A program made the translations under genes and the position numbers. Of a stretch of 64,000 nt of DNA, positions 4,396 to 27,100 are shown one piece after another; the stretch's first letter is position 1, and each line of letters starts with the position of its first letter. The notes beneath the pieces are model-generated. The model did not search any database. It saw nothing but the letters and a program-made list of their open reading frames with translations, and was not told the DNA's origin. Location of the stretch: contig MCFE01000363.1 in NCBI GenBank assembly GCA_002104905.1, positions 1-64,000 of the forward strand. The letters run 5' to 3'. The DNA comes from Basidiobolus meristosporus CBS 931.73. Taxonomy: Eukaryota; Fungi; Basidiobolomycota.

Positions 4396-7300
4396 GGCAG
4401 CTCGCTTTGATATCAGCTGATGATCTCAAGGATTTGTGCTTCCTGTCCGTGTACGTTTCAGTGCAATATCACCTACTCTGAGTGAACAAGGCAGACTGTG
4501 TGTGAAATACGCAACAGTATATAAGGGCAACTGTACCTTTCGACAAACTCAACATACAGTCCACACCCTTGATTCGTTCTCGAGAGCTGCCAGCTTGTTC
4601 AGGAGTAGCACTCATCCGTCTGCCATCTCGCCGCCCAGATGATCGCCCGGCTTTGAAGGGAATGCCTCATTCTACCGCAAACAGATAGGTGATGGTAATG
4701 CATCGACTGGGATCGGCTACGTATTCCTATCCGTACTTGCTACCGGGATTAATGTCATTGCTGAGCACATGTATGTCACCTCAATGCATATTGGCATTTT
4801 ACCTTTTGCACAGTTGTAAGGAGTGATTGGCAGGAAAAGGTGATATCCACTTGAATAAACTAGTCTAATGATGACGATGCAACAAAATATGAGCATGATT
4901 TAATCGGAACAGGTACTCGTCATTAGTAGCCGACGGTGTTATCTGTTGCATCAATATGAGTGTTGTAATATATTAAAGCCTTTACTCATTTCGGTAGATG
5001 AACAGGCGCATTATGCCAAGAAGTGTCCGTCCCATCCAAATATTAAAGGCTTCGGCCAAGTCTTACCATCACACAGGTGGATATCCTATTCAACTTATAT
5101 TCTTGGCTTATCTTGCTATCAATGCATGCATAATCGAAATGGTTGGATGAATTCACGTACTGTGGTGACTGATGATGTCGAATATTCGTCCATCATTGAA
5201 TTGCTGCTTTTTCCCGCATCCCATAAATTTCAGATGGTATTTTCCGCAGCACTGTCAACTGCTTTCTAGTATTCCGGGAAGTTCTCCAAGGCCTTTTGGC
5301 TTTGGACTACCTATTGCCATATATAATGCTTGCGGGCCGGTCATCACGATCTTCACTCGATGAATGAAAATTCCGACTTCCTTTGTTAAGAGTCCAATTG
5401 AACGATCTCATGAGATTTGGTACGCTATTAGCCAATATATTGGATTAGGAATGCCTGGAATTCTAATTACAGGTAAATATGAGTAGCGTGACGACTAAGC
5501 CGTAATATGTCACCAACTCTCCAACATTTCTGAGGTACTAAGGTGTTTAGATATGGTTTGGAAGCTTATCGTATTCGATCGAATAATATTTGGCACATTG
5601 CTACCAGTATTGGTAAACAGAGTCTAAGGGCATGTTGACAACCATCAAAATAGTACTCCATTTAAAGCCTTCCACAATTGCAGATATTTATCACACATTC
5701 AATGTTTTCCCAATTAGCAAGATGCATACTAAAATATTCGATAATAAGGAGAAGTGGTTACCTCCAACTTTTGGCAAATCAATGTATTATAGCAGGGCGC
5801 ATACAAAAGTTCCTTAAGGAATCCAGTAGTACTGAACGCCTGAACTAGCTAGGATAGACCTTGAAATACTAGCATCCTTCGTGGTAAACTAAAATGTACT
5901 GGGTAGCACTGCGATAAAACACTATCTCCAACGGAAATAATGCAGCATTTGTAGACGATGCTCGTAGTCTGCGGTATCAGCAGTGAATTTGTGATGTCAG
6001 AATATCTAACATCACGTGCATTGCAGTCTACCGCCCTTACTAACTTTGTACGTACCGAGGGCATAAACCAGCTAGTGTCAAGAAACATATAAATGAAACT
6101 TATGTTTGGCGATAGTACTGTATGGATACAGACACTTCGCAGTAACTCAGAGTGGGAGGCTGAAACACTCTGTAGTTATTGCTAGTTGGAGTGGGCTGAT
6201 ATTGCTACACCTGATATGCTGAAACATCTGCCAAATCGGGCACATTGAGCCTACCTCGCAGGGAAAATGCCCAGTGTTGGAACTACACGGCAAAAGCTCG
6301 ATTAAACTGAGCTCTGAAATATTGAATCACTCGCTTGGATGCAACAGATAACATCGCCGTTAACTGATGGCGATCACTTGTTCCAAATAAGTCATGCTCA
6401 TATTTTGTTGTATCGTCATCATTAGACTAGTTTATTCAAGTGGAGAACTCCTTTTCCTGCCAATCACTCCTTACAACTGTGCAAAAGGTAAAATGCCAAT
6501 ATGCATTGAGGTGACATACATGTGCTCAGCAATGACATTAATCCCGGTAGCAGGTATGGATGAGAATACATGGCCGATCCCAGTCGATGCATTAACATCA
6601 CCTATCTGTTTGCGGTAGAATGAGGCATTCCCTTCAAAGCCGGGCGATCATCTGGGCGGCGAGATGGCAGACGGATGAGTGCTACTCCTGAACAATCTGG
6701 CAGCTCTCGAGAACGAATCAAGGGTGTGGACTGTATGTTGAGTTTGTCGAAAGGTACAGTTGCCCTTATATACTGTTGCGTATTTCACACACAGTCTGCC
6801 TTGTTCACTCAGAGTAGGTGATATTGCACTGAAACGTTCATGGAACGGAAGCACAAATCCTCGAAATGGACAGCTGATTCCGAAGTGAACTTCCGAATCG
6901 GCAGCATGAGTCATGGCCTCTTCAGTGGTACACACTGCACTTCGTACTAAGCATCCAGCTGGCCAATTCCACCGCGCAACCTTGCACTGAGAATACGAGC
7001 TACAGGTCCTGTAAGAGAAGCACGTGTGGTCGACTCTCCAATTGGTGCTGCAGCATATGCAGTCGTTCGCCCAAATTCACCGTGTTACCTTGCACTGAGC
7101 AAGATGCATGGGTGAACCTAGTTTGGACTAGGATCCATCGGGCTTCTATCTCAAAATCTGGGTGGCTCATCAGATACTTGGTGTCACAATGCCATATATC
7201 CTTATACGGATTCTAGCTATTCCTTCCCGATGCACTAAATCCAAGGGCCACATGAAAGCCAACTTTGGTAACTGGGTGTTAGACCCCAATATTGGTGGTA

Positions 7301-7760
7301 CGCTCTTCAGTCCTCTAGTGCTACTGTTCTGCACCATGTTTGCACCCAAGCTACATAGTCCGTTGATGCCATGAATGTGCATAAAAGGTGTACTGGCACA
7401 AGTGGAATGAGCAACAGACAATCCACATCCTGCTATCCCTTCTGCTGGCGTTCTGGCTGTTCGCACAACATCTGATGGCCCACTATCTATGGTAATGGGT
7501 GCTTTACTGGTGATGCATACGCATTAGTGATCCGCTACTTACGGAGCAATGAGCAAGGTTTACCCCCGGTGCTGAATTAGGGACTATGGAGATGACTTTA
7601 CTCTGTGTTTAATAAGCTAGAATAAAGGAATGGAGGGAGGTCTTTTTGGATCTTTCAGAGAATTATGAATTATTTTTGCCAGGTAGTTATCTTCTCCAGT
7701 GTGGTTTTTCGCATGGAATCCGCCAGTGTATGGTTCCGTGTGTTATTTGGAAGTAGTGTA
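4396..7760 (+). repeat. ~3.35 kb direct repeat, copy 1 (copy 2 at 12161-15510)
   Basis: ORF pairs 4436/12201, 4946/12711, 5172/12937, 5632/13397 and 5849/13614 are all offset by 7765 bp. Sequence is near-identical by eye, with a few small indels. Confidence 0.95.
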
Positions 7761-9183
7761 TATACATGGATGACATAGATATGTGCTAAATCGAACAAGC
7801 AATGTTAATATCACGGGTCTATACAGCAACCTCGCAGTTTGCCTGTTTATTTATACTCTGAAGGTACTATTAGACGCTGTGAACCTGAGAACATACTAAA
7901 GATATTTCTCATACAATGTTGATTGTACAATAAAAAAGTGATGGTATTTCGCATAGATAATTAAGAGCAACAGCAACCAGCACCTCTAGATGGAGTGCCG
8001 CACTAAGATTCAGTGGGGGCATGCTATCCGTCGATCTAGGGTGAAATTGGAAACGATGATTTGACCCGTCATCATTAAGAAGGTTTATTCAGAAGGATAG
8101 TGACTCGCTACATGCCTGCTCATCACATCGATCCTCAATGACTAAAATACAATGCTAATCGGCACATCCCATTAGCAAAGCACCCTATCGGTGGTCCCCG
8201 AGTAGTATCGATTTGCTGCTACATTGAAAGCAAGATGCCAATCATTACAAGTGTGCTCAGACGGTGTATCGGCAGCAATCAGGGCTTTGTCTCCAAGACC
8301 GGGCTATCGCCTGGGCAGAGTCACGGCCAAAGGAAAAAGCCCACTCCTGAACAAACTGGCAGCTCCGGAGAACGAGTCAAGTGTGTGGATTGTATGTTGA
8401 CTATGACCTGAAAGCTGCTTACCCTTATATACTTTGGGCTGTCCTACTCGCGACCAAGTCGATTCTCTCATAGCCCGTCTCATCGCATATGAATCACACG
8501 AACTTCTACGTCTCGATTCTAACTTGCTCAAATGGATTTATTGGTGGACAGCGCCCCACACCTGAAGCTTGGAGAGACTCTCATCACATCGCTTTTGAGC
8601 CACTTCAAGATCCAGATCCCGATAGAAGCTGATAGTATCTAATACGAGAACAAGTCCATTGATCTGTGTGCCATGGATTCAGGTTTGCTACCCTTTAAGT
8701 GGAACCAAGTGAAACTGAAAGCTAATTGGCCGTGGCACTAAACTCTGTAATGAGAAACATATTCACTCATGAAGGTGGTAGAAAATGCGAATAAGTGCCA
8801 TATTTGTAGTTGAAGTTAATTAAGGGATCTTCCCAAAATCTGGATGATTCTTTACAAAGCTGCTTGTCAACTTTGGGTAAGCATGGGTGGTACAGCATTT
8901 CCGAATGTAGCAGCACTCTGTATGTGTAAGCCACTCAGTGCCTATGAGTGCAAGCATTCAGTAGCGGTTTGTTGGCAAGATGGTACTGGGCCTCAATACT
9001 AGTGGACCATTCTTCACTAGTGCTACTGTTGTGGCCGAAACACCGACACAGTTGCAATTTCGCAATTACCATGAATACGTATAAAAGACACGATGTTGGA
9101 AGTTGAAAGCTCAACATACAATCCACATACCGGGGTTCTCCTGTCCGTTTCAATTCAAGCAAGTGAAGTATTGTAAAGTCTGC
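5778..9183 (+). repeat. Left arm of ~3.4 kb inverted repeat (right arm 24134-27512)
   Basis: Reverse complement matches at both ends (AATCAATGTATTA.. at 5778 vs 27512; CAGACTTT.. at 9183 vs 24134). ORFs 5849(-)/27192(+), 6648(-)/26344(+), 7170(-)/25759(+), 8304(-)/24786(+) and 8935(-)/24017(+) correspond. Confidence 0.93.
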
Positions 9184-10351
9184 CCGGCCCTTCTTGGTGG
9201 TTCATTCTCGCTGGTGATTCCGACTATCCTGCATGGTGCTGTTCCGCTGGAGGTTTTCACTGTTGGTACGGCTTCCTTGTTGCTACCTACGTTCTGTGAG
9301 TTGATCACACATCGATATGTGTAATAATAGATTTGTTGTGGCCTTTTCACCATTCCAAGAATTGTGGTTTGGTTGACGTTAATTGATGCTCGCACTTCCT
9401 TGAATAAAACAGACGTGGTAAAAAAACAGTCATAAATTTGCAAACTTGGGCAGGGATAATAGGATGTCGTTCGTAGCATTTTGAGTTACTAACCCACTTA
9501 CTACTGGTATTTTGCAATATCTATGGAATGATGTGTGATATCGTAGGAATCCTTACAACAGTACAAATGGCTGATTTTTACATTTTTGGATTTTCTAATG
9601 GATGCTAAAAATTTACTAAAAATGGCAGCCTACAGGATAGCCACATCTTGTTGAAGGATTACTCGATTTGGTTGATCTTGATCTTTGTTGTCTTTATCCA
9701 CAGCATGAACCTTCAAAGTTGGGGACTACGATTATGAAAATTAAAGCAAACTATTGCAACATGCTGCAATAACAGATTCACTGAAAATTCAACGGCTGCT
9801 GAGAACTCTGATGAGAAATTTCCGTATTTCATACCGTAATACACACCTTAGTCTAATCATGATGCTAGAGTGGATCTCATTAAACAAGCCCCAAAGTACG
9901 ACAAAGACCCTTAGTACACCCCCCAAGGCCACACCTATACGGGCTAACATAAGTTCAAGCCAAACCACGGTAGCACTGAGGTCAATTCAAAACAACTAAT
10001 ACTAATTATGGAAAAACCTGCTTGGCTCAGTAGCACTATAGTATTTATAGAGTTCTTTGTGGACTGCAACACCGGTTAAACCTACCAAGTTACGGTGTCT
10101 ACCTTAGCGCCTTTGAACGTCTGGGGTCTTAGTCATAATCATTATTACGACCATAGTCTAAGCCCGTTACGAGTCAAAGGGATGTCTAGTATGGTAGGCA
10201 TGGATCCGAATTGCCATATTTGGTTTCTCTCCGAAACGCTCTTTACCAAGATATGCCTTCTCGATTTCGATTTTATGCGGTGCCCTGTAATCGTTTATTA
10301 CATTTGCTTATTGACGCAGTTTATCACCATGAAAGCACACAACTCATCTAA

Positions 10352-10717
10352 CAGTCTCTTGTATCTCACGGTACACTTTACATTCTAGAAACCATCAATT
10401 TGCACAAAACCAGATACAGATTTGGGGTTCTAGTCATCTGGTTTGACCATCGCTTACTCCTAAAAGAACTAGTGGCAGCACATCCGGTATTACCATAGTT
10501 AAATTGGTACCACCAAGCTTATTTCAGCCCTTCTAGGTTAGCCAACTAGCTTGAGGTGGTTGGAATGCGATTACCCGTGTCTATTGGCTGCCTACTACTT
10601 AAGAAACTGGAGTCTTCGTGGATTTTAACTCATCGATGAAGCCATTGGCTGGTAAGAAATCGAATCGTAATAACGATAAGATTTCATGCTATTCCGAGAC
10701 CGTACTACTAAACGCGT
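10352..10717 (+). repeat. 366-bp near-perfect inverted repeat tract (partner 15957-16322)
   Basis: I could see only one mismatch between this tract and the reverse complement of 15957-16322; flanks on both sides are much more diverged. Confidence 0.92.
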
Positions 10718-12160
10718 TGCGAACGGTTATCACTGATTCAAACGGCCGTTTCACCATAATAGATAACGTTAATTGAGATTGAACCACCCACATATTTCTA
10801 GAATCAACGCGTGTACATGGGAAGATGAATCTAGACAATAGAACCTCACATAGAGCATCAGCCGATAGTGGTTTGCATAATAGATAGTATACTGAACATT
10901 AAGTTATAAATGCGAAATTTGAATCTAGATGTTTGAGCCGCACTTAGATATCATCCCAGTGCGAACATAGATTACAGATTAAATTAAGCATCACTATCAA
11001 TAATCTAAATATATAACCATGGTATAGGAGATAAAGCTCCATGTCATTTAGTGATGAACTTTCAAATCATGTTCAATGTTATAAAGAAATATTGGAATCG
11101 GTTTACTTTCAAGGCGTTGGTTTCTGGGGCAAGCTACTTTATAGTCGATAGCTCGCCAGTTACAATTAAGCGGCTCCCTCACGGTTTCGCATGAAAAAGT
11201 AGTGATGGCTCTAGACAGCGCTATAAATGTCAATTCCATAATGATTGCTATAAACACTACTATATTGTAATCGCGTGCTTGTTCGCCCTTCACCTTTCTC
11301 CATTGCCCATACACATACTGATTTAAAATAGTAGACCAACTTACACATTGGCAAATTTCATCCCAAAACCCACGCTTCAGCAGATAACCAGTAAGTAACA
11401 AGACTGCAAAATCCCTTGAAAGATCCAAAAGATCACCCCCATTCCTTTATTCTAGCTCATTAAACACAGGGTAAAGTGGCCCCACAGTCCTTAAGTAAGC
11501 ACGGGGGCTAAACCTTGCTCATTGCTCCGTAAGTAGCGGATCACCAATGCGTGTGCATCCCCAGGAAAGCACCCGTTACCATAGATAGTGGGCCATCAGA
11601 TGTTGTGCGAACAGCCAGAATGCCAGCAGAAGGGATAGCAGGATGTGGATTGTCTGTTGCTCATTCCACTTGTGCCAGCACACCTTTTATGCACATTCAT
11701 GGCATCAACGGACTATGTATCTGGTATGCAAATATGGTGTTGAATAGTAGCACTAAGGAACTGTAGAATCTTCCACCAATAACGCGGTCTAGCACAACGC
11801 TACCAAAATAGGCTTTCATGTGGTCTGTTGATCTGGTACACCTTTGAAGAATAATTAGAATTCGTATAGGATATATGGAATAGTGACACCAAATATCTGA
11901 TGAGCCACCCAGATTTTAGGAAGGAAACCAGATTAACATTGCCCGAATATCCTGCTCAGTGAAAAAAAGTACGGTGACAAGAGACGAATAGATTCCAGTG
12001 CTCCAACACCCATTGGGGCATTGTTCACTTAGTTTTCTCTTGCCGGATCTGTAGCACATATTCTCAGTGCAAGGTTGCGTTGTGGAATTGGCTAGCCGAA
12101 TGCTTAGTACGAAGTGCTCTGTGTTCCATTGGAATGACTAAAGATTCGTTTGGCTGGCTC

Positions 12161-15100
12161 GGCAGCTCGCTTTGATATCAGCTGATGATTTCAAGTATTT
12201 GTGCTTCCTCTCCATGTACGTTTCAGTGCAATATCACCTACTCTGAGTGAACAAGGCAGACTGTGTGTGAAATACGCAACAGTATATAAGGGCAACTGTA
12301 CCTTTCGACAAACTCAACATACAGTCCACACCCTTGATTCGTTCTCAAGAGCTGCCAGCTTGTTCAGGAGTAGCACTCATCCGTCTGCCATCTCGCCGCC
12401 CAGATGATCGCCCGGCTTTGAAGGGAATGCCTCATTCTACCGCAAACAGATAGGTGATGGTAATGCATCGACTGGGATCGGCTACGTATTCCTATCCGTA
12501 CTTGCTACCGGGATTAATGTCATTGCTGAGCACATGTATGTCACCTCAATGCATATTGGTATTTTATCTTTTGCACAGTTGTAAGGAGTGATTGGCAGGC
12601 AAAGGTGATATCCACTTGAATAAACTAGTCTAATGATGACGATGCAAAAAAATATGAGCATGATTTAATCGGAACAGGTACTCGTCATTAGTAGCCGACG
12701 GTGTTATCTGTTGCATCAATATGAGTGTTGTAATATATTAAAGCCTTTACTCATTTCGGTAGATGAACAGGCGCATTATGCCAAGAAGTGTCCGTCCCAT
12801 CCAAATATTAAAGGCTTCGGCCAAGTCTTACCATCACACAGGTGGATATCCTATTCAACTTATATTCTTGGCTTATCTTGCTATCGATGCATGCATAATT
12901 GAAATGGTTGGATGAATTCACGTACTGTGGTGACTGATGATGTCGAATATTCGTCCATCATTGAATTGCTGCTTTTTCCCGCATCCCATAAATTTCAGAT
13001 GGTATTTTCCGCAGCACGGTCAACTGCTCTCTAGTATTCCGGGAAGTTTTCCAAGGCCTTTTGGCTTTGGACTACCTATTGCCATATATAATGCTTGCGG
13101 GCCGGTCATCACGATCTTCACTCGATGAATGAAAATTCCGACTTCCTTTGTTAAGAGCTCAATTGAACGATCTCATAAGATTTGGTACGCTATTAGCCAA
13201 TATATTGGATTAGGAATGCCTGGAATTCTAATTACAGGTAAATATGAGTAGCGTGACGACTAAGCCGTAATATGTCACCAACTCTCCAACATTTCTGAGG
13301 TATTAAGGTGTTTAGATATGGTTTGGAAGCTTATCGTATTCGATCGAATAATATTTGGCTCATTGCTACCGGTATTGGTAAACAGAGTCCAAGGGCATGT
13401 TGACAACCATCAAAATAGTACTCCATTTAAAGCCTTCCACAATTGCAGATATTTATCACACATTCAATGTTTTCCCAATTAGCAAGACGCATACTAAAAT
13501 ATTCGATAATAAGGAGAGGTGGTTACCTCCAACTTTTGGCAAATCAATGTATTATAGCAGGGCGCATAGAAAAGTTCCTTAAGGAATCCAGTAGTACTGA
13601 GCGCCTGAACTAGCTAGGATAGACCTTGAAATACTAACATCCTTCGTGGTAAACTAAAAGGTACTGGGTAGCACTGCGATAAAACACTATCTCCAACGGA
13701 AATAATGCAGCATTTGTAGACGATGCTCGTAGTCTGCGGTATCAGCAGTGAATTTGTGATGTCAGAATATCTAGCGTCACGTGCATTGCAGTCTACCGCC
13801 TCAGATACCCTTACTAACTTTGTACGTACCAAGGGCATAAACCAGCTAGTGTCAAGAAACATATAAATGATACTTGTGTTTGGCGATAGCACTGTATGGA
13901 TACAGACACTTTGCAGTAACTCAGAGTGGGAGGCTGAAACACTCCGTAGTTATTGCTAGTTGGAGTGGGCTAATATTGCTACACCTGATATGCTGAAACA
14001 TCTGCCAAATCGGGCACATTGAGCCTACCTCGCAGGGAAAATGCCCGGTGTTGGAACTACACGGCAAAAGCTCGATTAAACTGAGCTCTGAAATATTGAA
14101 TCACTCGCTTGGATGCAACAGATAACATCGCCGTTGACTGATGGCGATCACTTGTTCCGATTAAATCATGCTCATATTTTGTTGTATCGTCATCATTAGA
14201 CTAGTTTATTCAAGTGGAGAACTCCTTTTCCTGCCAATCACTCCTTACAACTGTGCAAAAGGTAAAATGCCAATGTGCATTGAGGTGACATACATGTGCT
14301 CAGCAATGACATTAATCCCGGTAGCAAGTACGGATAGGAGTACGTAGCCGATCCCAGTCGATGCATTAACATCACCTATCTGTTTGCGGTAGAATGAGGC
14401 ATTCCCTTCAAAGCCGGGCGATCATCTGGGCGGCGAGATGGCACACGGATAGGTGCTACTCCTGAACAAGCTGGCAGCTCTTGAGAACGAATCAAGGGTG
14501 TGGACTGTATGTTGAGTTTGTCGAAAGGTACAGTTGCCCTTATATACTGTTGCGTATTTCACACACGGTCTGCCTTGTTCACTCAGAGTAGGTGATATTG
14601 CACTGAAACGTTCATGGAAGGAAGCACAAATCCTCGAAATGGACAGCTGATTCCGAAGTGAACTTCCGAATCGGCAGCATGAGTCATGGCCTCTTCAGTG
14701 GTACACACTGCACTTCGTACTAAGCATCCAGCTGGCCAATTCCACCGCGCAACCTTGCACTGAGAATACGAGCTACAGGTCCTGTAAGAGAAGCACGTGT
14801 GGTCGACTCTCCAATTGGTGCCGCAGCATATGCAGTCGTTCGCCCAAATTCACCGTGTTACCTTGCACTGAGCAAGATGCATGGGTGAACCTAGTTTGGA
14901 CTAGGATCCATCGGGCTTCTATCTCAAAATCTGGGTGTCACAATGCCATATATCCTTATACGGATTCTAGCTATTCCTTCCCGATGCACCAAATCCAAGG
15001 GACACATGAAAGCCAACTTTGGTAACTGGGTGTTAGACCCCAATATTGGTGGTACGCTCTTCAGTCCTCTAGTGCTACTGTTCTGCACCATATTTGCATA

Positions 15101-15510
15101 CCAGATACATAGTCCGTTGATGCCATGAATGTGCATAAAAGGTGTGCTGGCACAAGTGGAATGAGCAACAGACAATCCACATCCTGCTATCCCTTCTGCT
15201 GGCGTTCTGGCTGTTCGCACAACATCTGATGGCCCACTATCTATGGTAACGGGTGCTTTACTGGTGATGCACACGCATTGGTGATCCGCTACTTACGGAG
15301 CAATGAGCAAGGTTTACCCCCGGTGCTGAAGAGGGATTGTGAGACCCCTTTAATATATGTTTAAAGAGCTAGAATAAAGGAATGGAGGGAGATCTTTTGG
15401 ATCTTTCAAAGGATTTTGAATTATTTTTGCCAGGTAGTTATCTTCTCCAGTGTGGTTTTTCGCATGAAATCCGCCAGTGTATGGTTCTGTGTGTTTTTTG
15501 GAAGTAGCAT
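12161..15510 (+). repeat. ~3.35 kb direct repeat, copy 2
   Basis: Begins GGCAGCTCGCTTTGATATCAGCTGATGA as at 4396; similarity fades after GGAAGTAG near 15507. Confidence 0.95.
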
Positions 15511-15528
15511 ATATATATATATATATAT
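15509..15528. repeat. (AT)10 microsatellite
   Basis: Read directly; lies where direct-repeat copy 2 diverges from copy 1. Confidence 0.95.
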
Positions 15529-15956: not shown

Positions 15957-16322
15957 ACGCGTTTAGTAGTACGGTCTCGGAATAGCATGAAATCTTATCG
16001 TTATTACGATTCGATTTCTTACCAGCCAATGGCTTCATCGATGAGTTAAAATCCACGAAGACTCCAGTTTCTTAAGTAGTAGGCAGCCAATAGACACGGG
16101 TAATCGCATTCCAACCACCTCAAGCTAGTTGGCTAACCTAGAAGGGCTGAAATAAGCTTGGTGGTACCAATTTAACTATGGTAATACCGGATGTGCTGCC
16201 ACTAGTTCTTTTAGGAGTAAGCGATGGTCAAACCAGATGACTAGAACCCCAAATCTGTATCTGGTTTTGTGCAAATTGATGGTTTCTAGAATGTAAAGTG
16301 TGCCGTGAGATACAAGAGACTG
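15957..16322 (-). repeat. Partner of the 366-bp near-perfect inverted tract
   Basis: Reverse complement of 10352-10717. Confidence 0.92.
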
Positions 16323-17849
16323 CTAGTTGAGCTTAGTGTTCACATGGAGTTTACAATATTATGTCAGTAAGTTAGGTTATTGGAGGTACCAGCAGGTACA
16401 TAGAATTCAAGGCATGAGGGAGGTATGAACATCAAAGGCGAGGGTGGACTACGCTAGTGAGCTAAAAATACCTAATCCAAGTACATCATACCTATATACC
16501 TGCACAGTTATTGCCGGTGTTAATTTCATTGGCACATAACATAGTATAATTCAATGTTATAATAGCTGCCTATGCTGTAGACTGGGGTTGAAAGAGATAT
16601 TGTGATTCAATTGGTTACATCGGCACTGTAGCGTATAAGAAGCTCCACATACACCAAAAAACTTTGCCTAATAGAATGTTGCTATCTGTTATAGTAACCA
16701 TTTTCATTAGCCCGTATAGGCTTGGGGGCGCACTGTGGGCTTTTGTAGTCCTTTCGGGTATATTAAATGAAATCCGTTGTAGAATCGTGATCAGTTGTGT
16801 TTGCCAACATCCCCAGTCGTATCCACTTGACACCCGGTATATCTATAACAAGTTTGGTCATTCTTTGTCATGAAGAAGTCTCCATCAAATCTACACCTCA
16901 ATCGAAACTCATACCTACGTGGAAGTCCAAAAACCACTTCAATATGTATACACTGATATGGGAATATTGATTGAGCTACCTGCTTGATCTAGACAAATTA
17001 TACAAACTGTATTGCTGCTTTGCGTATTTGTATCAAGAATAGCCCTCGGAAGAGCACTGCCTCAAAGTAGCACATACGCATTCATTACTTGTTGGTGATA
17101 TGCCGATGCACGCTCAATGTACGCTCCACTATCCTGTCCCCTAGTAGCACGTCACCCAATATAGTTAACTTGTAATATCTCGGAATTACTCGATTTGCTT
17201 GCACTTTTGTTGGTTGGTTCAGGAAATTACTAAAATCAGGAGACTCCAAAAGTAGTGAATGATAAGCACTGAGTTACCGGCCTACTGACCCTAACTTGAG
17301 TTTTACTTCGTATAGGCCCACCTAAAGCAACGCTTGCCCTGTGAGGATCGAAACCTTATTCCAACAGGCCTTAATTCTATCGCGCCACAAAGAGATGCAA
17401 TGGGGATAAATTGAATTCTAGTTTTACCAATGGCCCAGCGTCCACGGAATTTCTAGGAGGTCCGTTAGTGTTACATTCGACAACGCTTGGCTTCAACATT
17501 TATGGCAGAATCTCTTGTGTATTCAAGTTCGGGCTGTTGATGCATATGATATAGATCAAGATCTCCTGCTTAATTGTGTATCCTACTGAAGTCGAATAAG
17601 ATTTCATCACGATGGAATGATCCTGAAGCTACCATATTTAATGATTTATCTAACATCCATCAGAAAATCATAAAAATGTGAAATTTCTCCCACAGTTCCT
17701 GTAAGCGAAGCTCGAGTGATTAACGCCCCATTTTCCGAAGGAAGAAGATTCATTCGTTTAATTTATCACACTATCTAGTACGGAGCAAGATACATTGGTG
17801 AAGCTCGTTCGCGCTTATATCAATCTGGTTTCCTTCCCAAGATTTGGGT

Positions 17850-18500
17850 GGCACAATAGAGATCCGGTACCACAGTGCCATATATCCATATACAATTTTC
17901 AACCATTCCAAAACGACGTGCTGATCCTAAGGGCGGCGTGATATTCAACATTGGTAGCCTTTATACTGGGACTCGATGCTGGCGTAAAATTTTTCTTTAC
18001 ACTAGTACTACTCTTCAACATCACTTTTGCACACAAGATGCAGAGTACATTGTTGCTGTGAATGCACATAAAAGATGCATTAGCACAAGTGAAATAACTA
18101 ACATACAGCCAACATTCTGCTACCCCTTCAGCCGACGTTCTGCCTGTTCGCTCGACATCTGATGACCTATCTTTTATAGTAACGAGTGCTTTCCGGATGA
18201 TGAATACACATTGGTAATCGGCTGCTTATATAGCAGCTAGGAAAGTTTACTTTCATTGTTGACTGAGGAACTATGGGAACCACTTGTTTGATATGCCCGA
18301 ATGAAGGAATAGGAAGAGTTTTTTTGGATCTTTAAAAGGATTTTGCAGTATTGTTACCCACTAGTTGTCTTCAACAGTGAGCAAGCTTACTTGGAATTTG
18401 CAAGTGTGTGGCTCCATGAACTATTTTGAATCGATATGTTTATAGATCGCAGGGGTGTTTGTAAAAATCGAATCAGCAACAGCAATATAATTCGGTTTAT
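17850..18500 (-). repeat. Diverged module homologous to 7140-7800
   Basis: Collinear similarity: GATTTGGGTGGC, GCCATATATCC, ATAAAAGATG, TAACATACAGCCAACAT core, TTTTTGGATCTTT. Confidence 0.8.
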
Positions 18501-18821
18501 CGCAATCATAGGAGCATTAATATTGGCGTCATATGATTAAATTGCAATAAATGGCTCTTCACGTACAAATAATGAGGTAAACATTTATTTGAAGCTGACC
18601 AGTGAGTGACGCGAAGGCAAAGTAATGATTGATTTGTTTAGCAGCCCTGTATACATATGCGCTTAGGGCATTTGCGGTGGTCTTGCAACGACGTAGCTAC
18701 TGAATTAAGCTTTAGCATGGCCTTATTCGTGAGATAGTAACATTGCATGTATTTTGAAAACAATGAAAAGTATCAGAAATGAATGTATCTTCGCTACATA
18801 CTGTACTGAGGTTCAGCAGAA

Positions 18822-19527
18822 GCATGCTATCCATCGATCTAGTGTGAAATTGGAAACGATGATTTGACCCGTCATCATTAAGAAGGTTTATTCAGAAGGA
18901 TAGTGACTCGCTACATGCCTGCTCATCACATCGAACCTCAATGACTAAAATACAATGCTAATCGGCACATCCCATTAGCAAAGCACCCTATCGGTGGTCC
19001 CCGAGTAGTATCGATTTGCTGCTACATTGAAAGCAAGATGCCAATCATTACAAGCGTGCTCAGACGGTGTATCGGCAGCAATCAGGGCTATCGCCTGGGC
19101 AGAGTCACGGCCGAAGGAAAAAGCCCACTCCTGAACAAACTGGCAGCTCCGGAGAACGAGTCAAGTGTGTGGATTGTATGTTGACTATGACCTGAAAGCT
19201 GCTTACCCTTATATACTTTGGGCTGTCCTACTCGCGACCAAGTCGATTCTCTCATAGCCCGTCTCATCGCATGATCGCTCGCATATGAATCACACGAACT
19301 TCTACGTCTCGATTCTAACTCGCTCAAATGGATTTATTGGTGGACAGCACCCCATACCTGAAGCTTGGAGACACTCTCATCACATCGCTTTTGAGCCACT
19401 TCAAGATCCAGATCCCGATAGAAGCTGATAGTATCTAATACGAGAACAAGCCCATTGATCTGTGTGTCATGGATTCAGGTGTGCTACCGTTTCAGTGAAA
19501 CCAAGTAAAACTAATAGCTAATTGGCC
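18822..19527 (+). repeat. Left ~0.7 kb inverted repeat flanking RdRP (direct copy of 8019-8731)
   Basis: GCATGCTATCC...AATTGGCC; near-identical to 8019-8731 and to the reverse complement of 24586-25260. Confidence 0.93.
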
Positions 19528-20154
19528 CCGACAAAAATTGTCTTCTTAGTGGTCCTTGCTTTATGAAGCGTATTTGACACATGGAAATTTCTTGGAGTGG
19601 AGTCGAACGAAATCCACCTTATGTGGGACTAGAAAGAATTTCCTGAAAAGTGAACTGAATCATATTTTCATTTTTGGTGCTACCTATATATTATATTTAT
19701 AGGCAGTCAAAAATAGTTATGATCCAGTTTGAAGCTAAAGGTGAGTACCGAAATGAATCCATATAACCATCAAACTAATGGCGAATATGTATTATGAAGT
19801 GTAGGAAATACGAGTAGCTAAAAGACTGAGTTACGATGGGTTGTGTTCATTTAAAAATGCCATAAATTGATTGCCTCTTGGGTTGTACGATTTTTTAATT
19901 AGTCAAGCCCGATGGCAGAGCTATTGTCGATTCCAGTTTAGGTTTCAAACAGTAGTCGCACATCTCAGAAGGTGAAATGGTCTCTAATAGTATTGGTTAC
20001 TGTGTATAGTCGAGTCGGACCTACCATAAGTACTGTAGTACTCATTCTGTCCACGGCTTAGAGTTACTCGAATTACAAATGCTGGCTATAAAAGCAATGC
20101 GGAATCGCTTCGTCCACATTTTTGCCTAATTCCTCTCTCTGATTTAACTACTGA

Positions 20155-23100
20155 ATGAAGGTGCTAGCTGTTCAGGTAAACCATACAGATTAATTTATCG
20201 TGAGATTTAATATGTAACAAATCACAGCATAATACCAATGACTGTAGAAGCGAAGATACTCAGACACCATGGTATCCTGGTCCTCTATTATTCAGGAATA
20301 TCGACCCAAGTCGTCTCCAGGAGTTAGGCATTTATATTCAGGGCTTACCAGCTTCTATGAAGGTCACAGATGTGAAGAATTATTTTTCCAAATGGGGCTA
20401 TGTTAACTCGTGCACAGTGATACCAAGGCAAAATCATGTACGAGGTAATGCAGCCGTAGTCAATTTCAAACCACCACCACCTACTCTAGATTTTATGGAT
20501 CAACTATATCACCGTGTGCGTCAAGAGCAGAGAAGCGAAGTTCTCCTTATCGAATTTACTGCCAAAACCGCTGAGCATCTATATCGCCAATTCCAAGGGG
20601 TGTATACGCCATCTGTCTACTACACTGGGTTAGCCTCGCTAGATATGGGCACTAATTTAAACAACAAACAATTCCTGCGCATTTGGGGGCCTTCTAACGG
20701 CTGTCTTATTGAGGTGAACTTGGAAAGAAGATATATATTTTTACAGTTCTGTCACAACGATTATGTCTATCGAATTGGAATTCGATGGGATGAAATCCGG
20801 GCATTAACGTTCGATACTGAACGTGCAAATGTGTGTACTTTATATATACAAACCAACAGTTCACCTTTCCTATGGTGCCGGCACGAGATTCCCGTGGCAA
20901 GCGCCTCTCATGGCAACCGCTGGAGTGAAGAGAACTATTGGCGACGTGTCCCCTACATTAGCGATCCATATTCAACAGACCCAAATTTTACCACTAGAAT
21001 ACGTGTTGGCGATTTCAACGCGTATCGAGTATGTGCTCCATTATTCAATTCATGTGGTGAGCCATTCCAAGTGGCGATAAATATATTGACTCAGTACAGC
21101 AATATGGCAAGCAAATTCAACTCGACAATCCCAAGCGTAATAGATGTATCGACACGACGTATTGAGGACATGTCTTCGCTTCCGTTTGAATTAGTATACA
21201 TTATCCAATGCTTAACTTGTGCGCAAAAGCTTACACCATACAACTTATCAAAGGAGTGGATTGCGTTTATTGGTAATCTGGAGCCATGGATCGCCAAAAA
21301 TTTATTATACCGGATGATGGAAACCAAATGTTTAATCGAAGATCCTTTGAAGTACTCCCAAAATATACTACCGAAACTGAACAGCATGAAAGTAGACCTG
21401 GAAGAAATATCTCAAGAGCGGATGTGGGTTCGTAGGGCTATTGTTACCACCAGCAAAGTCCATCTCTTGCTCCCAACTCTTGAATCATCAAATCGAATTC
21501 TGAGACACTTCTGTCGGTACAAGGATCATTTCCTTCAAGTGACTTTTTCCGATGAGCACAATGAAAAGCTAGGCCCCGATTTAGATGAATACGAAGAGAT
21601 ATTACGTGATATTGAGGAAAAGCTGACATGTGGATTCTACACCGCCAACAGACATTATAGATTCCTTGGATTCTCTTCAACGCAGCTACGCGAACACACC
21701 TGCTGGTTTTTTGCTGATACACCAGATGGCATAGACGTGAAATATATTCGTGAGTGGATGGGTGACTTCAGCGAAATCAAAAGCCCAGCTAGACATGCCG
21801 CACGTATGGGGCAGTGCTTTTCCAATACACGCGCAGTTAAGACCCTTCAAAAAGGTGATATGAAAGAGATGCCGGACATCGCTCGAAATGGATATGTGCT
21901 TTCAGATGGTGTTGGTAAAATTTCCTGGTCGTTGGCAACCGAAATCGCTAGCACATATCACCGGCGGGAAGTTCCCGGCGCCTTCCAGTTTCGTCTCGGT
22001 GGTTACAAAGGAGTTCTTGCTGTTGCCTCTGACAATGAGATGGATGGCTACTCAGTTCATCTGCGCCCGAGCCAGAATAAGTTCAGATCCACTCATACCG
22101 AATTAGAGATTGTCAGAACTGCGGAGTTTATGCCTGCTTATCTCAATCGGCAACTCATTATGCTATTAGTCTCAATGGGTATTCCAGAGGATGTCTTCGT
22201 GCAAATACAGGATGACTATTTGCAGGAAGTGGAGGGCATTACCAGCAATGAGAGATCCGCTTTGAGTATCCTAGCTCTACATATCAATGGAAGTTGGATA
22301 GTCAAGACTCTAAGAGATATGGTCCTTGCGGGATATCTCAGGTTTGGGGATGCTATGACCAAATCCATGCTAAAGCTCTTTCAAATCCAGGTTCTGAGGG
22401 ATACCAAAGAACGTGCTAGGATACCAGTTGAACAGGGCGCCCATTTGATAGGTGTTTTGGACGAAACGAATACTTTGAAAGAAAACCAAGTAGTTATTCG
22501 CTTCACTGACCCACAGGATCCCAGCACAATAAGAAGCTATGTGGGCCCTGCATTGGTTACTCGGAATCCGTATCTGAATCCAGGTGATGTCCACATGGTC
22601 GAGGCGGTCGATATTCCGCATCTTCGTTCTCTTGTAAATTGTATCGTATTCTCTTCTCAAGGTGAGAGAGACTTACCCAGCCAGTGCAATGGAGACCTTG
22701 ATGGGGATACATACATGACAATATGGGACAAACGATTACTGCCATCTCAGAGGAAATTCGTATCCGGTTACAACAAGTGCGAGATTACGGCTGCCCGGAA
22801 GATCACAATTGACGATACAATTAAGTTTTTTATCCATTACGTTGTATCAGACAATGTAGGTGCGATAGCGAATGCTCACTTAGCCTGGGCTGACCAGTCA
22901 CCTTATTACACTCTATCAAATAAGTGTGTATCATTATGCCAGCTTCATTCCAAGGCAGTCAGCTTCATCAAGACTGGAGTTCCCGCAAGGCTCCCTTTTT
23001 CTTTGCGCCCAAAGCTATGGCCGGATTTTATGAACAAGAACCCGAGAAAATCATACATCTCAACCAATGTTCTGGGGAAAATGTATAGAAGTAGTGCTCA

Positions 23101-23602
23101 GAAGTTAAACGCGGCATTAGAGCTATACTCAACATGTACATCTGAGGATGCGCGATTAGACGAGAAACTTCTGGTACCTGGATATGAAGCATACATAGCA
23201 GAGGCCTTAAACCTGAAGCAAGAATACGACATTATGATTCGGGATATCATGAACCAGCATGAAATACAAACAGAGGCTGAGGTAATATCCGGATATATCC
23301 AGAAATTTTCTCATATTGTTAGCCGAAAGAAGGAAAAATTCTTGCTGAAAGAAAGCCTGGGGAATGTTATCAGTGCTATATGGAAAACCTTCCATGATAA
23401 ATTCAATGCCGAGTTTGCTGACGATACCGACAATCACAAAGTGAGTATCAATCGTAAACGAAAAGCCAGTGCCTGGTATTACGTATCGTACAATGATCCG
23501 AATTTAACAGCCAGCGATCCTTTTATGAACGACTCCTCACTCACATCGTTTTCTTGGGTTGTCTGTGATATACTACAATCTATTGCATCAGATATTGAAT
23601 AA
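20155..23602 (+). CDS. Eukaryotic RNA-dependent RNA polymerase (RNAi-type RdRP/RDR family) with N-terminal RRM-like region
   Basis: 1081-aa ORF 20357-23602 with FLQVTFSDE, FLGFSSTQLR, WMGDF..AARMGQCFS, SDGVGKIS, FQFRLGGYKG, YLNRQLI, DLDGD, NAH..AD, PDFM. The frame stays open upstream to 20204 (adds IYIQGLP, RNP2-like). A plausible exon 1 (ATG 20155-20175) plus a 52-nt GT..AG intron (20176-20227) joins in frame; this start is inferred. Confidence 0.95.
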
Positions 23603-24133
23603 AATACAATTCGTCATTAAAGTCTTAATGAACTAAGAATAATCGGCATTGACATTGATTTTTTAGTGGCGAACTGGCAATTATCTTTACTTTGGTGATT
23701 GTGAGCACGAACCTACCTATTAATCAGACCATAATCCCTGTACTAGCCCAAAATGGAGTTGGCAAATTTGGATTTTGGTCAATGCATCAATTGGAATATA
23801 GAGTGGCATAGCTTTGATTGGATGAGGAACCACCGGATGTAGGTCACTATACAATGGAAATTACTTACGATGAAACATCCACAACTCATTGCTAATTGAT
23901 ATGTATATATATATAGGGCTCAAGTATCTATTTCATTAAAGTAAGCATGAGCACACATGTCAACACCTACCAACTTGTAATTGTTGGGTAGTGAATAGGC
24001 CTCTACGAATAGGTTATTGCACACAGTAATTGGCCATAAGCCTATAAAATGTATATTTATCATACAAAGAAGTTACCGAAATCAAAAAAACACCACCATA
24101 GATGATGCAAATGAACCACCAAAGGAGATATGG

Positions 24134-27100
24134 TCAGACTTTATAATACTTCACTTGCTTGAATTGCAACGGACGGGAGAACCCCGGCTTGTGAATTGTA
24201 TGTTGCGCATTCAACTTCCAACGTCATGCCTTTTATACGTATTCATGGTAATTGCGAAATCGCAACTGTGTCGGTGTTTCGGCCACAACAATAGCACTAG
24301 TGAAGAATGGTCCACTAGTATTGAGGCCCAGTACCATCTTGCCAACAAACCGCTACTGAATGCTTGCACTCATAGGCACTGAGTGGCTTACACATACAGA
24401 GCGCTGCTACACTCGGAAATGCTGTACCACCCATGCTTACCCAAAGTTGACAAGCAGCTTTGTAAAGAATCATCCAGATTTTGGGAAGATCCCTTAATTA
24501 ACTTCAACTACAAATATGGCACTTATTCGCATTTTCTACCACCTTCATGAGTGAATATGTTTCTCATTAAAGAGTTAAGTGCCACGGCCAATTAGCTTTC
24601 AGTTTCACTTGGTTCCACTGAAAGGGTAGCACACCTGAATCCATGGCACACAGATCAATGGACTTGTTCTCGTATTAGATACTATCAGCTTCTATCGGGA
24701 TCTGGATCTTGAAGTGGCTCAAAAGCGATGTGATGAGAGTGTCTCCAAGCTTCAGGTGTGGGGTGCTGTCCACCAATAAATCCATTTGAGCAAGTTAGAA
24801 TCGAGACGTAGAAGTTCGTGTGATTCATATGCGAGCGATCATGCGATGAGACGGGCTATGAGAGAATCGACTTGGTCGCGAGTAGGACAGCCCAAAGTAT
24901 ATAAGGGTAAGCAGCTTTCAGGTCATAGTCAACATACAATCCACACACTTGACTCGTTCTCCGGAGCTGCCAGTTTGTTCTGCCCAGGCGATAGCCCTGA
25001 TTGCTGCCGATACACCGTCTGAGCACGCTTGTAATGATTGGCATCTTGCTTTCAATGTAGCAGCAAATCGATACTACTCGGGGACCACCGATAGGGTGCT
25101 TTGCTAATGGGATGTGCCGATTAGCATTGTATTTTAGTCATTGAGGTTCGATGTGATGAGCAGGCATGTAGCGAGTCACTATCCTTCTGAATAAACCTTC
25201 TTAATGATGACGGGTCAAATCATCGTTTCCAATTTCACCCTAGATCGACGGATAGCATGCCCCCACTGAATCTTAGTGTGGCACTCCATCTAGAGGTGCT
25301 GGTTGCTGTTGCTCTTAATTATCTATGCGAAATACCATCACTTTTTTATTGTACAATCAACATTGTATGAGAAATATCTTTAGTATGTTCTCAGGTTCAC
25401 AGCGTCGAATAGTACCTTCAGAGTATAAATAAACAGGCAAACTGCGAGGTTGCTGTATAGACCCGTGATATTAATATTGCTTGTTCGATTTAGCATATAT
25501 CTATGTCATCCATGTATATACACTACTTCCAAATAACACACGGAACCATACACTGGCGGATTTCATGCGAAAAACCACACTGGAGAAGATAACTACCTAG
25601 CAAAAATAATTCATAATTCTCTGAAAGATCCAAAAAGACCTCCCTCCATTCCTTTATTCTAGCTTATTAAACACAGAGTAAAGTCATCTCCATAGTCCCT
25701 AATTCAGCACCGGGGGTAAACCTTGCTCATTGCTCCGTAAGTAGCGGATCACCAATGCGTGTGCATCACCAGGAAAGCACCCGTTACCACAGATAGTGGG
25801 GCATCAGATGTTGTGCGAACAGCCAGAACGCCAGAAGAAGGGATAGCAGGATGTGGATTGTCTGTTGCTCATTCCACTTGTGCCAGCACACCTTTTATGC
25901 GCATTCATGGCATCAACGGACTATGTAGCTTGGGTGCAAACATGGTGCAGAACAGTAGCACTAGAGGACTGAAGAGCGTACCACCAATATTGGGGTCTAA
26001 CACCCAGTTACCAAAGTTGGCTTTCATGTGGCCCTTGGATTTAGTACATCGGGAAGGAATAGCTAGAATCCGTATAAGGATATATGGCATTGTGACACCA
26101 AGTATCTGATGAGCCACCCAGATTTTGAGATAGAAGCCCGATGGATCCTATTCCAAACTAGGTTCACCCATGCATCTTGCTCAGTGCAAGGTAACACGGT
26201 GAATTTGGGCGAACGACTGCATATGCTGCGGCACCAATTGGAGAGTCGACCACACGTGCTTCTCTTACAGGTCCTGTAGCTCGTATTCTCAGTGCAAGGT
26301 TGCGCGGTGGAATTGGCCAGCTGGATGCTTAGTACGAAGTGCAGTGTGTACCACTGAAGAGGCCATGACTCATGCTGCCGATTCGGAGGTTCACTTCGGA
26401 ATCAGCTGTCCATTTCGAGGATTTGTGCTTCCTCTCCATGAACGTTTCAGTGCAATATCACCTCCTCTGAGTGAACGAGGCAGACTGTGTGTGAAATACG
26501 CAACAGTATATAAGGGCAACTGTACCTTTCGACAAACTCAACATACAGTCCACACCCTTGATTCGTTCTCGAGAGCTGCCAGCTTGTTCAGGAGTAGCAC
26601 TCATCCGTCTGCCATCTCGCCGCCCAGATGATCGCCCGGCTTTGAAGGGAATGCCTCATTCTACCGCAAACAGATAGGTGATGGTAATGCATCGACTGGG
26701 ATCGGCTACGTATTCCTATCCGTACTTGCTACCGGGATTAATGTCATTGCTGAGCACATGTATGTCACCTGAATGCACATTAGTATTTTACCTTTTGCAC
26801 AGTTGTAAGGAGTGATTGGCAGGAAAAGGAGTTCTCCACTTGAATAAACTAGTCTAACGATGGCGAAACAACAACATAGGAACATGCTCTAATCGTAACA
26901 TAATGCTTGTCGTTATTCAACGAGGGTGTTATCTGTAGCATCCAAGCGAGTGATTCAACATTTCAGAGCTCAGTTTAATCGAGTTTTCGCCGTGTTGTTC
27001 CAACACCGGGCATTCTCCCTGCGAGGCAGGCTCAATGTGCCCCATTTGGCAGATGTTTCAGCATATCAGGTGTAGCAGTGTCAGCCCCCTCCAACTAGTA

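Follow-up and report, generated by a model that had tools for sequence, protein, structure and literature searches.

A conserved two-box element in duplicated subtelomeric modules of Basidiobolus meristosporus, with possible core promoters of short non-coding units

Results

The window, by which we mean the whole 64-kb stretch analysed, comes from Basidiobolus meristosporus CBS 931.73 and lies at a chromosome end, where a cluster of repeated modules adjoins a terminal retroelement array and has an RdRP gene embedded in it (Table 1). Together with other loci, about 120 kb of this one genome was examined. The retroelements beside the cluster are non-LTR-like and have telomeric-repeat junctions: their 3' ends at ~2318, ~2690 and ~4390 each carry a C-run, and CCCTAA repeats stand at the ~2318 and ~2690 junctions. 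They share no common sequence with the modules. Retroelement copies 91-96% identical to those at 1766-4394 also flank the RdRP paralogues at two other loci, L003 and L004, the latter of which terminates in (TTAGGG)n. With telomere-associated sequence adjoining and nested direct and inverted duplications within, the cluster is a subtelomeric segmental-duplication block; such direct and inverted duplications are typical of chromosome ends.

Table 1. The module cluster and its surroundings. The strand given for a module is that of its proposed transcript; the core as first described lies on the opposite strand.
Feature	Position	Strand	Description
RT-encoding retroelements	1..4394	+	Degenerate, head-to-tail array; telomere-side boundary of the module cluster
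A0 cassette interior	4396		Cut at this position by the retroelement end
A0	4518..4566	+	TATATAAG at 4518-4525, 24-nt spacer, core 4550-4566
A-B-C-D super-unit	6311..9206	.	Basic duplicated block
A1	6724..6772	-	Two boxes; proposed unit from 6740 leftward to ~6411; AATAAA at +304
B1	7380..7428	+	CATAAAAG, 24-nt spacer, core; proposed unit 7412 to ~7646; AATAAA at +209
C1	8383..8431	-	Two boxes; proposed unit from 8399 leftward to ~8065; AATAAA at +310
D1	9080..9128	+	TATAAAAG, 24-nt spacer, core; AATAAA at +291
Inner palindrome	11345..15480		Arms 84% identical
B2	11643..11691	-	Most diverged B copy, ~83% identical to B1
A2	12283..12331	+	Two boxes
A3	14498..14546	-	Two boxes
B3	15134..15182	+	Two boxes
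E1	18067..18115	+	Decayed B-like copy
C2	19167..19215	-	Half cassette; homology to C1 stops at 19527
RdRP gene (PF05183)	20155..23602	+	Inside the cluster; ORF 20357-23602 plus probable upstream exon
Probable RdRP upstream exon	20155	+	ATG at 20155; intron 20176-20227
Outer palindrome	24110..27532	.	Inverted copy of 5757-9206, 93.6% identical
D2	24189..24237	-	Core with 2 changes; outward arm cut after ~95 nt at 24110
C3	24898..24946	+	31-nt deletion in leader
B4	25851..25899	-	Two boxes
A4	26507..26555	+	Two boxes

An earlier note on this DNA had listed fifteen sites with a shared 17-nt core. Run over the window, a two-box HMM finds exactly 15 modules, all of them within 4550-26555, and matches every coordinate and strand in that list. 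The exact core pattern occurs nine times in the window against 0 expected, and allowing up to two mismatches gives 14 matches against 0.08 expected; the fifteenth module (18099, minus strand) has three mismatches to the core pattern and is recovered by the HMM at E=2e-9. The note had also considered that the module might be a dispersed MITE or SINE. Profile and sequence searches of the rest of the window and of 56 kb from three other Basidiobolus loci, two subtelomeres among them, found no copy.

The five subfamilies proposed in the note are real and comprise five copies of A, four of B, three of C, two of D and one of E. Copies within a subfamily are recent segmental duplicates, flanks included (83-100% identical), so the independent evidence consists of five lineages and not of 15 observations. 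E1 is 67-71% identical to B over 750 bp, with 5 of 17 core positions changed relative to B; its AATAAA has become AATGAA and its CTGGRT motif is gone. All of these signals, the core included, were lost together, and the copy is probably dead.

Nested direct and inverted duplications built the locus, and as a duplication structure the “palindromes within palindromes” of the note stand. The inner palindrome consists of an inverted A/B unit (11345-12744), a 1.3-kb spacer and an A/B unit (14085-15480), and 12161-15518 is a direct copy of 4396-7767 at 96% identity. Breakpoints fall at 4396, 5757, 7767, 8002, 9206, 11345, 12744, 14085, 19527, 24110 and 27532; beyond 19527 unique sequence leads toward the RdRP gene, whose 3' end is faced by D2. 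The individual pairs are another matter. Each had been taken for an ancient fold-back, yet its two sides share only the two boxes plus ~40 nt, the cores (17-20 nt) are the sole inverted repeats within a cassette, and the cassette folds no better than chance (z=-1.37 against shuffles). A hairpin or inverted-repeat siRNA locus was rejected on the same grounds, in that only the cores pair between the halves and the cassette MFE has this z. The reported ~0.7-kb spacing is borne out by measurement: starts lie 688, 672, 668 and 688 bp apart in the A/B pairs, and 729 and 741 bp apart in the C/D pairs. It is inherited, however; A/B and C/D are the only independent types of pair, and these two are in turn old duplicates of each other.

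A second box had been overlooked. The motif noted earlier as CTT(T/A)TA is a TATA element whose distance from the core is exactly 24 bp in each of the five subfamilies and in 15/15 copies. Read on the strand opposite to the core as first described, it is a canonical TATAWAAG, with the core beginning 33 nt after its first T; every module (15/15) matches TATAWAAG/TATAWAWR in this sense, as TATATAAG in A and C, TATAAAAG in D and CATAAAAG in B and E. The modules account for 15 of the 23 YATAWAAG sites in the 64 kb. When A/C and B/D, the two deepest clades, are compared in gapless register, the core bins are 85% and 72% identical and the TATA bin 80%, against ~25% elsewhere, which is the random level. 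HMMs built from one clade place every module of the other as the top non-self matches in the window. The note's statement that the core survives deep divergence is thus upheld, and constraint on the core, a TG-rich 17-mer, is very probable. Neither the RdRP promoter nor other gene promoters in the window contain it; it is confined to one local repeat family and is not a genome-wide promoter element.

Other conserved stretches lie on either side of the boxes. The interiors between TATA boxes (6773-7379 and 8432-9079) are poorly conserved save for short islands, one of which, (A/T)CTGGRT, is found in A, B, C and D at -217 to -273. This is the element that had been reported ~210-270 nt away, and it is accompanied by GAGCCAC in these four subfamilies; it was found neither in E nor in the A copy at 12315. 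Such a pattern of short islands is typical of regulatory DNA. Outward, A and C are homologous for at least 100 bp beyond the core, and the five A copies are nearly identical to ~+330 and divergent beyond. A/B copies that are 83% identical overall reach 90-100% in their outer flanks (6403-6842 and 7362-7561) and 45-80% in the interior, apart from one island at 92%. The identity of the flanks could reflect gene conversion among copies instead of selection.

The modules are non-coding and form neither a stable RNA nor a hairpin. In tblastx between subfamilies all six frames score alike and contain stops; substitutions lack 3-periodicity, indel lengths do not keep to multiples of 3, and the modules share no conserved ORF. 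Between 3.8 and 28.5 kb, RT fragments and the RdRP account for every ORF longer than 130 aa, Pfam finds no match in the spacers, and the annotation, where it covers the cluster (contig 11422-21421), calls no gene models. A role as start-codon context, one of those suggested for the core, is ruled out because there is no coding signal. On a role as guide or recombination site, suggested likewise, the sequence speaks neither for nor against. Rfam finds no family match among the modules, and the predicted outward RNAs have no excess structure (z=+0.46 and +0.20) and no covariation; inward ‘transcripts’ likewise have no excess structure (z ~0).

Discussion

We tentatively suggest, at somewhat less than even confidence, that the modules form divergent pairs of core promoters, each driving a short non-coding unit. 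Each module would be a compact core promoter with two protein-binding boxes, the TATA and the 17-bp box, at a fixed distance. Read as CAACAKACARTCCACAY, the 17-bp box would span the transcription start and the first ~17 nt, since 33 nt separate its beginning from the first T of the TATA and a start is expected about 25-40 bp downstream of such a box. A pair would then be two promoters firing outward from a shared regulatory interior of ~620 bp, and the products would be short, non-coding, unstructured RNAs of ~330 nt (A/C) or ~235 nt (B), measured to the sense AATAAA. We infer from sequence that the boxes act as promoters, that they fire outward and that Pol II would serve them; where the transcripts would end, and whatever function their RNAs may have, is inferred in the same way. 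All 15 copies may descend from one ancestral pair that gave rise to A-B-C-D, a block then multiplied by direct and inverted segmental duplications.

The pairs had been described as convergent, a term that depends on the strand chosen. TATA polarity, flank conservation and the AATAAA signals suggest outward units, with the pairs as divergent promoters. A sense AATAAA follows at +304 in A, +291/+310 in C, +209 in B and +291 in D, is degenerate in E, and falls within a conserved island between A and C; the inward strand of the interiors has none. The TATA element in the same sense precedes annotated gene starts by 30-65 nt in L003 and L002, and TATAAAAG recurs at 20087, where it precedes the probable RdRP start codon by 67 nt. 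Two further subtelomeres of this genome contain another repeat family of like arrangement, with CATAAAAG, then 23 nt, a conserved block and an AATAAA ~210 nt on. Against the proposal, the predicted outward RNAs show neither a conserved ORF, codon periodicity nor excess structure.

The opposite polarity is also sensible. Read inward, the 17-bp box would sit at ~-68 to -52, like a PSE or USE, and CTTWTATRC would be a TATA at ~-27, together an snRNA-type (type 3) promoter; paired units transcribed toward each other would yield ~200-nt small RNAs, or overlapping transcripts (dsRNA) feeding RNAi. We consider this unlikely, though more probable than the other rival readings. The 24-nt distance between box and TATA is invariant in five lineages, a geometry that fits an snRNA-type promoter only if the unit is read inward, and in plant USE-TATA promoters it is a Pol III-specific spacing that the fixed 24 bp here matches. 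The only U6 gene available (L003, 17946-18067) has a sense CTTATAC at -27 that resembles the second box so read, although no core lies within 100 nt upstream of this one gene, and the TATA of B matches the consensus poorly (TTTTATG). The first downstream T4 of B and D lies in the conserved island CCAGATTTTG, ~200 nt from the putative start, and is gone in E, but T4 runs occur in B, D and C only, inward of A none appears for ~850 nt, and both genuine Pol III genes here end in T5-T7. The inward ‘transcripts’ are also the least conserved part of the unit and lack both excess structure and an Rfam match. An RdRP gene within the cluster would suit a source of dsRNA, but the RdRP paralogues in two other subtelomeres have no modules. 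A further idea, and a long shot, makes the modules a lineage-specific class of subtelomeric mini-genes and their invariant 17 nt a 5' tag, recognized for example by the neighbouring RdRP or by an Argonaute-bound guide. If true, the cluster would serve as tagged template, or as source of small RNAs, in policing telomeric retroelements, and so would be a fungal counterpart of piRNA-type clusters.

Mobile-element relics without host function, whether solo LTRs or the decayed terminal inverted repeats of a DNA transposon or foldback element, are improbable, even in a region that abounds in repeats and retroelements. A TATA, start and AATAAA within 250-350 bp do resemble an LTR, and the two cores of a pair are inverted repeats of 17-20 nt. 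Homology between A and C nevertheless runs at least 100 bp past the core, which therefore does not mark the end of an element; unit boundaries are not sharp, as those of solo LTRs would be, and the flanks of the cores (AAGG vs CCTG, AAGT vs ACCG) show no matching target-site duplication. No gag/pol or transposase remnants and no Pfam match appear in the spacers, the nearby RT elements are of another kind and unrelated in sequence, and the 56 kb of other loci, with their two subtelomeres, hold no copies. A neutral relic would not retain two boxes amid a randomised remainder. That the core is instead a DNA site unconnected with transcription, for a recombinase or inversion system, a boundary or heterochromatin factor or an origin, is very doubtful. 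Alternating sites amid many inverted duplications could drive or reflect inversions, and a TG-rich 17-mer is long enough for a specific DNA-binding protein, but no breakpoint falls at a core, no recombinase gene was found at the locus, and the strictly phased TATA would go unexplained. We give least credence to the boxes being signals for splicing or coding in a small gene family, with GTATGT as a 5' splice site and CTTAT as a branch-point-like signal, or with the core as a peptide motif. Subfamilies A, C, D and E do have GTATGT, and in one frame the core variants appear by eye to be synonymous or conservative (V-D-C-M/L-L); B has GTCTGT, the island AACAGTAGCACTAG falls in different frames in B and D, and the coding tests and the lack of gene models described above speak against it.

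If the boxes are a promoter, the cluster offers a clean natural two-site core promoter in which five lineages have randomised everything except the sites and their spacing, so marking the essential parts. To our knowledge, almost nothing has been established about how promoters are built in early-diverging fungi (Zoopagomycota). The ‘gene desert’ beside this Basidiobolus telomere would likewise hold putative unannotated short transcription units, next to an RdRP family present at several chromosome ends, and to ends capped by retroelement arrays. The present evidence does not reveal a new mechanism.

Relation to known systems

Palindromic duplications left at chromosome ends by breakage-fusion-bridge cycles or fold-back repair resemble this locus in its nested inverted duplications with unique spacers just inside a retroelement-healed end. 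Such a mechanism, putative here, would account for the copy number and orientation of the modules but not for the two-box element. Human 61-29-37 TERRA promoter repeats and the S. pombe subtelomeric tlh/SH region are subtelomeric repeats with non-coding RNA promoters. Like them, the modules are unannotated, adjoin a telomere, have putative promoters, spread by segmental duplication and lie near multi-copy subtelomeric genes; they have no sequence in common with either, however, point both ways, lack telomeric repeats and are only predicted to be transcribed.

With the snRNA-type promoters of human and Drosophila (PSE) and plants (USE), the modules share a box of ~17-20 bp at a fixed distance from a TATA, boxes common to copies with diverged flanks, and short non-coding genes, here proposed. 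They differ in that the product matches no known snRNA and U6 of the same genome lacks the box, and the polarity of the TATA and the conservation of the flanks favour placing the box beyond the TATA, where it would act as initiator or leader and not as a PSE. A canonical TATAWAAG with a conserved block at the expected start site is the arrangement of TATA-plus-initiator Pol II promoters, and the oomycete INR+FPR is an example of a Pol II promoter with an extended conserved start-site block; the block in the modules is distinguished by being 17 nt long, nearly invariant and local to one repeat family.

A two-box repeat family

The cluster at 4550-26555 is made up of 15 repeat copies (modules) of five families, A to E, each with a 17-bp core and a second box. 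The degenerate core has nine exact matches in the window, with none expected from shuffles, and 14 when up to two mismatches are allowed (0.08 expected); the fifteenth (18099, minus strand) has three. A profile of the core and adjacent box recovered exactly 15 sites in the 64 kb window (E 4e-15 to 2e-9), at the coordinates and on the strands reported in the earlier note, and nothing beyond them there or in the three other loci of the genus that were compared (56 kb). The six close pairs seen previously are spaced 668-688 bp apart (A/B) or 729-741 bp apart (C/D). The shared element first written as CTT(T/A)TA proves to be a TATA element; in all 15 copies exactly 24 nt separate it from the core.

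Set against each other without gaps, the two deepest clades, A/C and B/D, agree at 85% and 72% of positions in the two core bins and at 80% in the TATA bin. Elsewhere between -150 and +150 their identity falls to 12-40%, as low as between unrelated sequences. Profiles of either clade return all modules of the other as their best non-self matches in the window. On these identities and cross-clade ranks, the between-subfamily similarity claimed earlier is real. It is limited to two short boxes at fixed spacing, a weakly similar stretch of some 40 nt to one side of them, and, about 220-270 nt off on the opposite side, a short (A/T)CTGGRT motif that accounts for the distant element noted before. 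Constraint on the two boxes, originally put forward as selection on the core, is well supported by these comparisons, and the independent evidence for it is five lineages (A with five copies, B four, C three, D two and E one) and not 15 copies.

Module sequence shares nothing with any family searched, and neither Basidiobolus subtelomeres nor these repeats turned up in literature searches. Four matches in public metagenomes to the core plus TATA pattern, all on low-GC contigs without homology to the window, look like bacterial DnaA-box clusters in sequence.

Duplication history and chromosome-end setting

The basic block is A-B-C-D (6311-9206), repeated in direct and inverted copies (see table). 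Family A resembles C, and B resembles D and E, the last a decayed B-like copy, which indicates that A-B and C-D are old duplicates of one pair. The constant spacing of ~0.7 kb, although present in the pairs as described, was therefore inherited and not kept independently six times. "Palindromes within palindromes" is apt as a duplication history but not for the single pair as a hairpin or fold-back, since complementarity within a pair is confined to the cores. Nested direct and inverted duplications are what chromosome-end regions accumulate, and the amplification pattern is ordinary subtelomeric duplication. A 400-bp inverted repeat (10327-10726 and 15948-16347, 97%) flanks the inner A/B palindrome, whose arms are 84% identical; these differing ages point to several duplication rounds or to gene conversion.

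Coordinates of repeats and genes in the window and in other B. meristosporus loci (L003 and L004, which carry RdRP paralogues)
Feature	Location	Remarks
Duplicated segment	4396-7767 and 12161-15518	direct copy, 96%, self-comparison
Duplicated segment	5757-9206 and 24110-27532	inverted copy, 94%, self-comparison
A/B unit	6311-7729 and 11345-12744	inverted, 83%, self-comparison
Repeat copy	8002-8731 and 18805-19527	self-comparison
Segment and its relative	7002-7752 and 17692-18430 (E)	68%, self-comparison
Retroelement arrays (same elements)	window 1-4394; L003 1-4170; L004 12500-18320	
RdRP paralogues beside retroelement arrays	window 20155-23602; L003 10001-12408; L004 10001-12232 and 18270-18492	at least three in B. 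meristosporus
Second repeat family	L004 2190-8395; L003 7326-7532 and 8405-8548	
~350-bp repeat, window	52794-53137, 54121-54499, 57087-57797	
~350-bp repeat, L003	4221-4602, 6045-6370, 13304-13585	
~350-bp repeat, L004	1022-1304, 12984-13318	
U6 snRNA and tRNA genes	L003 17946-18067 and 18206-18277	minus strand; U6 140 nt downstream of tRNA, same strand

The first 4.4 kb of the window is a head-to-tail array of degenerate, 5'-truncated retroelements encoding reverse transcriptase. Their 3' ends, at about 2318, 2690 and 4390, have a common AAATAAAGATTTCACC followed by TTGGTGAC and a C-run, with short CCCTAA repeats after the C-run at two of them. Two paralogous RdRP genes on other contigs are bordered by copies with 91-96% identity to these elements; one of the contigs (L004) ends in (TTAGGG)n ~6 kb beyond its RdRP. 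The array is oriented as expected of elements added to chromosome ends, whose sense strand should point inward, with telomeric repeats at their proximal junction. Array orientation, telomeric repeats and the copies near a (TTAGGG)n end together place the cluster just inside a chromosome end. By their behaviour the retroelements are like a telomere-attached family; sequence searches of PDB with the reverse transcriptase fragments gave only weak LINE/R2-like matches. In module A0, the A copy at 4550, sequence of the pair stops at 4396, the very position at which a retroelement 3' end begins, as if a break within the pair had been healed by the addition of a retroelement.

A second, unrelated repeat family, with units of 0.7-0.9 kb in both orientations, occupies the other two subtelomeres; its layout is module-like, with CATAAAAG, 23 nt, a conserved block (CAAGCCTAGTTTCAC...) and AATAAA about 210 nt on. 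A dispersed repeat of ~350 bp, 67-93% identical among copies, is present in L003 and L004 and in the part of the window that is poor in genes and rich in AT; 54119-54418 and 57084-57383 are 99% identical. Past the cluster (30249-33857, 38510-42064, 50201-51070) lie ordinary genes with long intron-free ORFs, for an ABC transporter, a P-type ATPase and an arrestin-domain protein.

Within the cluster, the RdRP ORF at 20357-23602 (PF05183) is 49-56% identical to Basidiobolus RdRPs. Its reading frame is open from 20357 for 1081 aa, matched over this whole length by a 1122-aa homologue from B. ranarum; the annotated model (726 aa, start 21422) looks too short. A probable first exon (ATG at 20155) with a 52-nt intron after it (20176-20227) would lengthen the N-terminus, and the extra part looks, by eye, RRM-like. 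RdRP pseudogene fragments lie upstream in L004, at 2874-3533 (inverted) and 6423-6764. The U6 gene of L003 has CTTATACAAA at -27 to -18, a T7 terminator and, seen by eye only, a plant-USE-like ATCCCATAAG at about -62 to -53.

Coding, RNA and transposon readings

The suggestion that the core is a start-codon context found no coding signal behind it. In six-frame tblastx between subfamilies all frames score alike, with stop codons in each; module substitutions have no 3-periodicity, indels are not multiples of three, no ORF is conserved, and ten spacer ORFs have no Pfam match. For the part of the cluster that the fetched locus spans (11422-21421 of the contig), public annotation lists no gene. 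Known RNA families were rejected because nothing came out of ARAGORN or of the Rfam scans, one of the whole window at gathering thresholds and a permissive one of 6200-9400. Structured RNA was discarded as well: folding of the pair, of inward B/D/E transcripts (read along the strand on which the core was first read) and of outward A and B transcripts gave no excess stability in either polarity (z between -1.4 and +0.7), and RNAalifold found no covariation in the A/C leader. A hammerhead ribozyme was suggested by CTGATGAG in family B, but D does not share the feature and Rfam gives no match. A C/D snoRNA at the conserved AATGATGACG island was set aside too, as the site has neither D box nor terminal stem. 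Tblastn with six RdRPs gave no match in the modules, against an origin as RdRP fragments. A transposon is at odds with homology that continues beyond the core on the outer side; no matching duplication occurs at the core flanks, and no transposase or gag/pol sequence was found around the modules. Enrichment of CCAAT boxes in the interiors (the DNA between TATA boxes) is unconvincing against the window average.

Polarity and a putative promoter

Oriented by the core, the pairs are convergent, as the earlier note had them, but four observations favour the outward, divergent polarity. On the strand opposite the core as first read, Box 2 is a canonical TATA: TATATAAG in A/C, TATAAAAG in D and CATAAAAG in B/E. 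There are 23 such octamers in the window, 15 of them in modules, and one (TATAAAAG, 20087) lies 67 nt upstream of the probable RdRP first exon; at L003 and at L002, the B. ranarum RdRP locus, a sense TATAWAAG stands 30-65 nt upstream of annotated gene starts. Along the TATAWAAG strand the core starts 33 nt past the first T of the box, which is where a start site is expected. Conservation lies on the outer flanks: A/B copies that are 83% identical overall are 90-100% identical outside the pair (6403-6842, 7362-7561) and 45-80% identical between the TATA boxes, except for one 92% island. Between A and C the core opens a nearly invariant 57-nt block extending outward, and the five A copies are near-identical up to about +330 and divergent beyond. 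Finally, a sense AATAAA occurs at +304 (A), +291/+310 (C), +209 (B) and +291 (D), inside a conserved island in A/C, and none is found on the inward strand of the interiors. The canonical TATA, the core at 33 nt, the outer-flank conservation and the sense AATAAA thus argue for a polarity opposite to that first assigned. In the decayed copy E, core, AATAAA and interior motif are lost together.

We propose that the two boxes form a core promoter in which spacing is important, and that the pairs are divergent promoters around a common regulatory interior of ~620 bp with short islands resembling factor sites. Each promoter would drive a short non-coding transcript of about 235-330 nt starting with the 17-nt box, probably a polyadenylated product of Pol II. 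We infer promoter role, polarity, polymerase and transcript ends alike, and hold them with differing confidence: that the modules are promoters, in either polarity, is likely, and the outward divergent reading with short Pol II RNAs has slightly less than an even chance.

The main rival reads the modules inward, with the core at about -68 to -52 and TATA at about -27, the PSE/USE plus TATA geometry of snRNA genes. The U6 of L003 offers it a parallel in a sense CTTATAC at -27, which resembles Box 2 in the orientation first assigned, but the upstream region of this gene, the only snRNA gene found in the DNA examined, has no copy of the core. B and D share a conserved T4 run ~200 nt inward, yet A has none for ~850 nt, and the U6 and a tRNA of B. 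meristosporus terminate at T7 and T5; Pol III termination was also rejected generally, as T-runs are inconsistent among homologous families in either polarity. Inward transcripts would also come from the stretch of the unit with the lowest conservation. If the inward reading were true, the convergent pairs could yield dsRNA beside an RdRP gene. However, the paralogous RdRP loci at two other chromosome ends (L003, L004), like L002, are without modules, and the association may therefore be only positional.

We regard this as a putative lineage-specific, unannotated family of promoter-bearing repeats. Its interest lies chiefly in a putative core promoter dissected by nature, in a fungal lineage that has been little studied; its setting also serves as a description of a Basidiobolus chromosome end. 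The modules would work like a two-site core promoter, either TATA plus extended initiator or PSE plus TATA; against the snRNA type stands the absence of the core from the one U6 gene compared.
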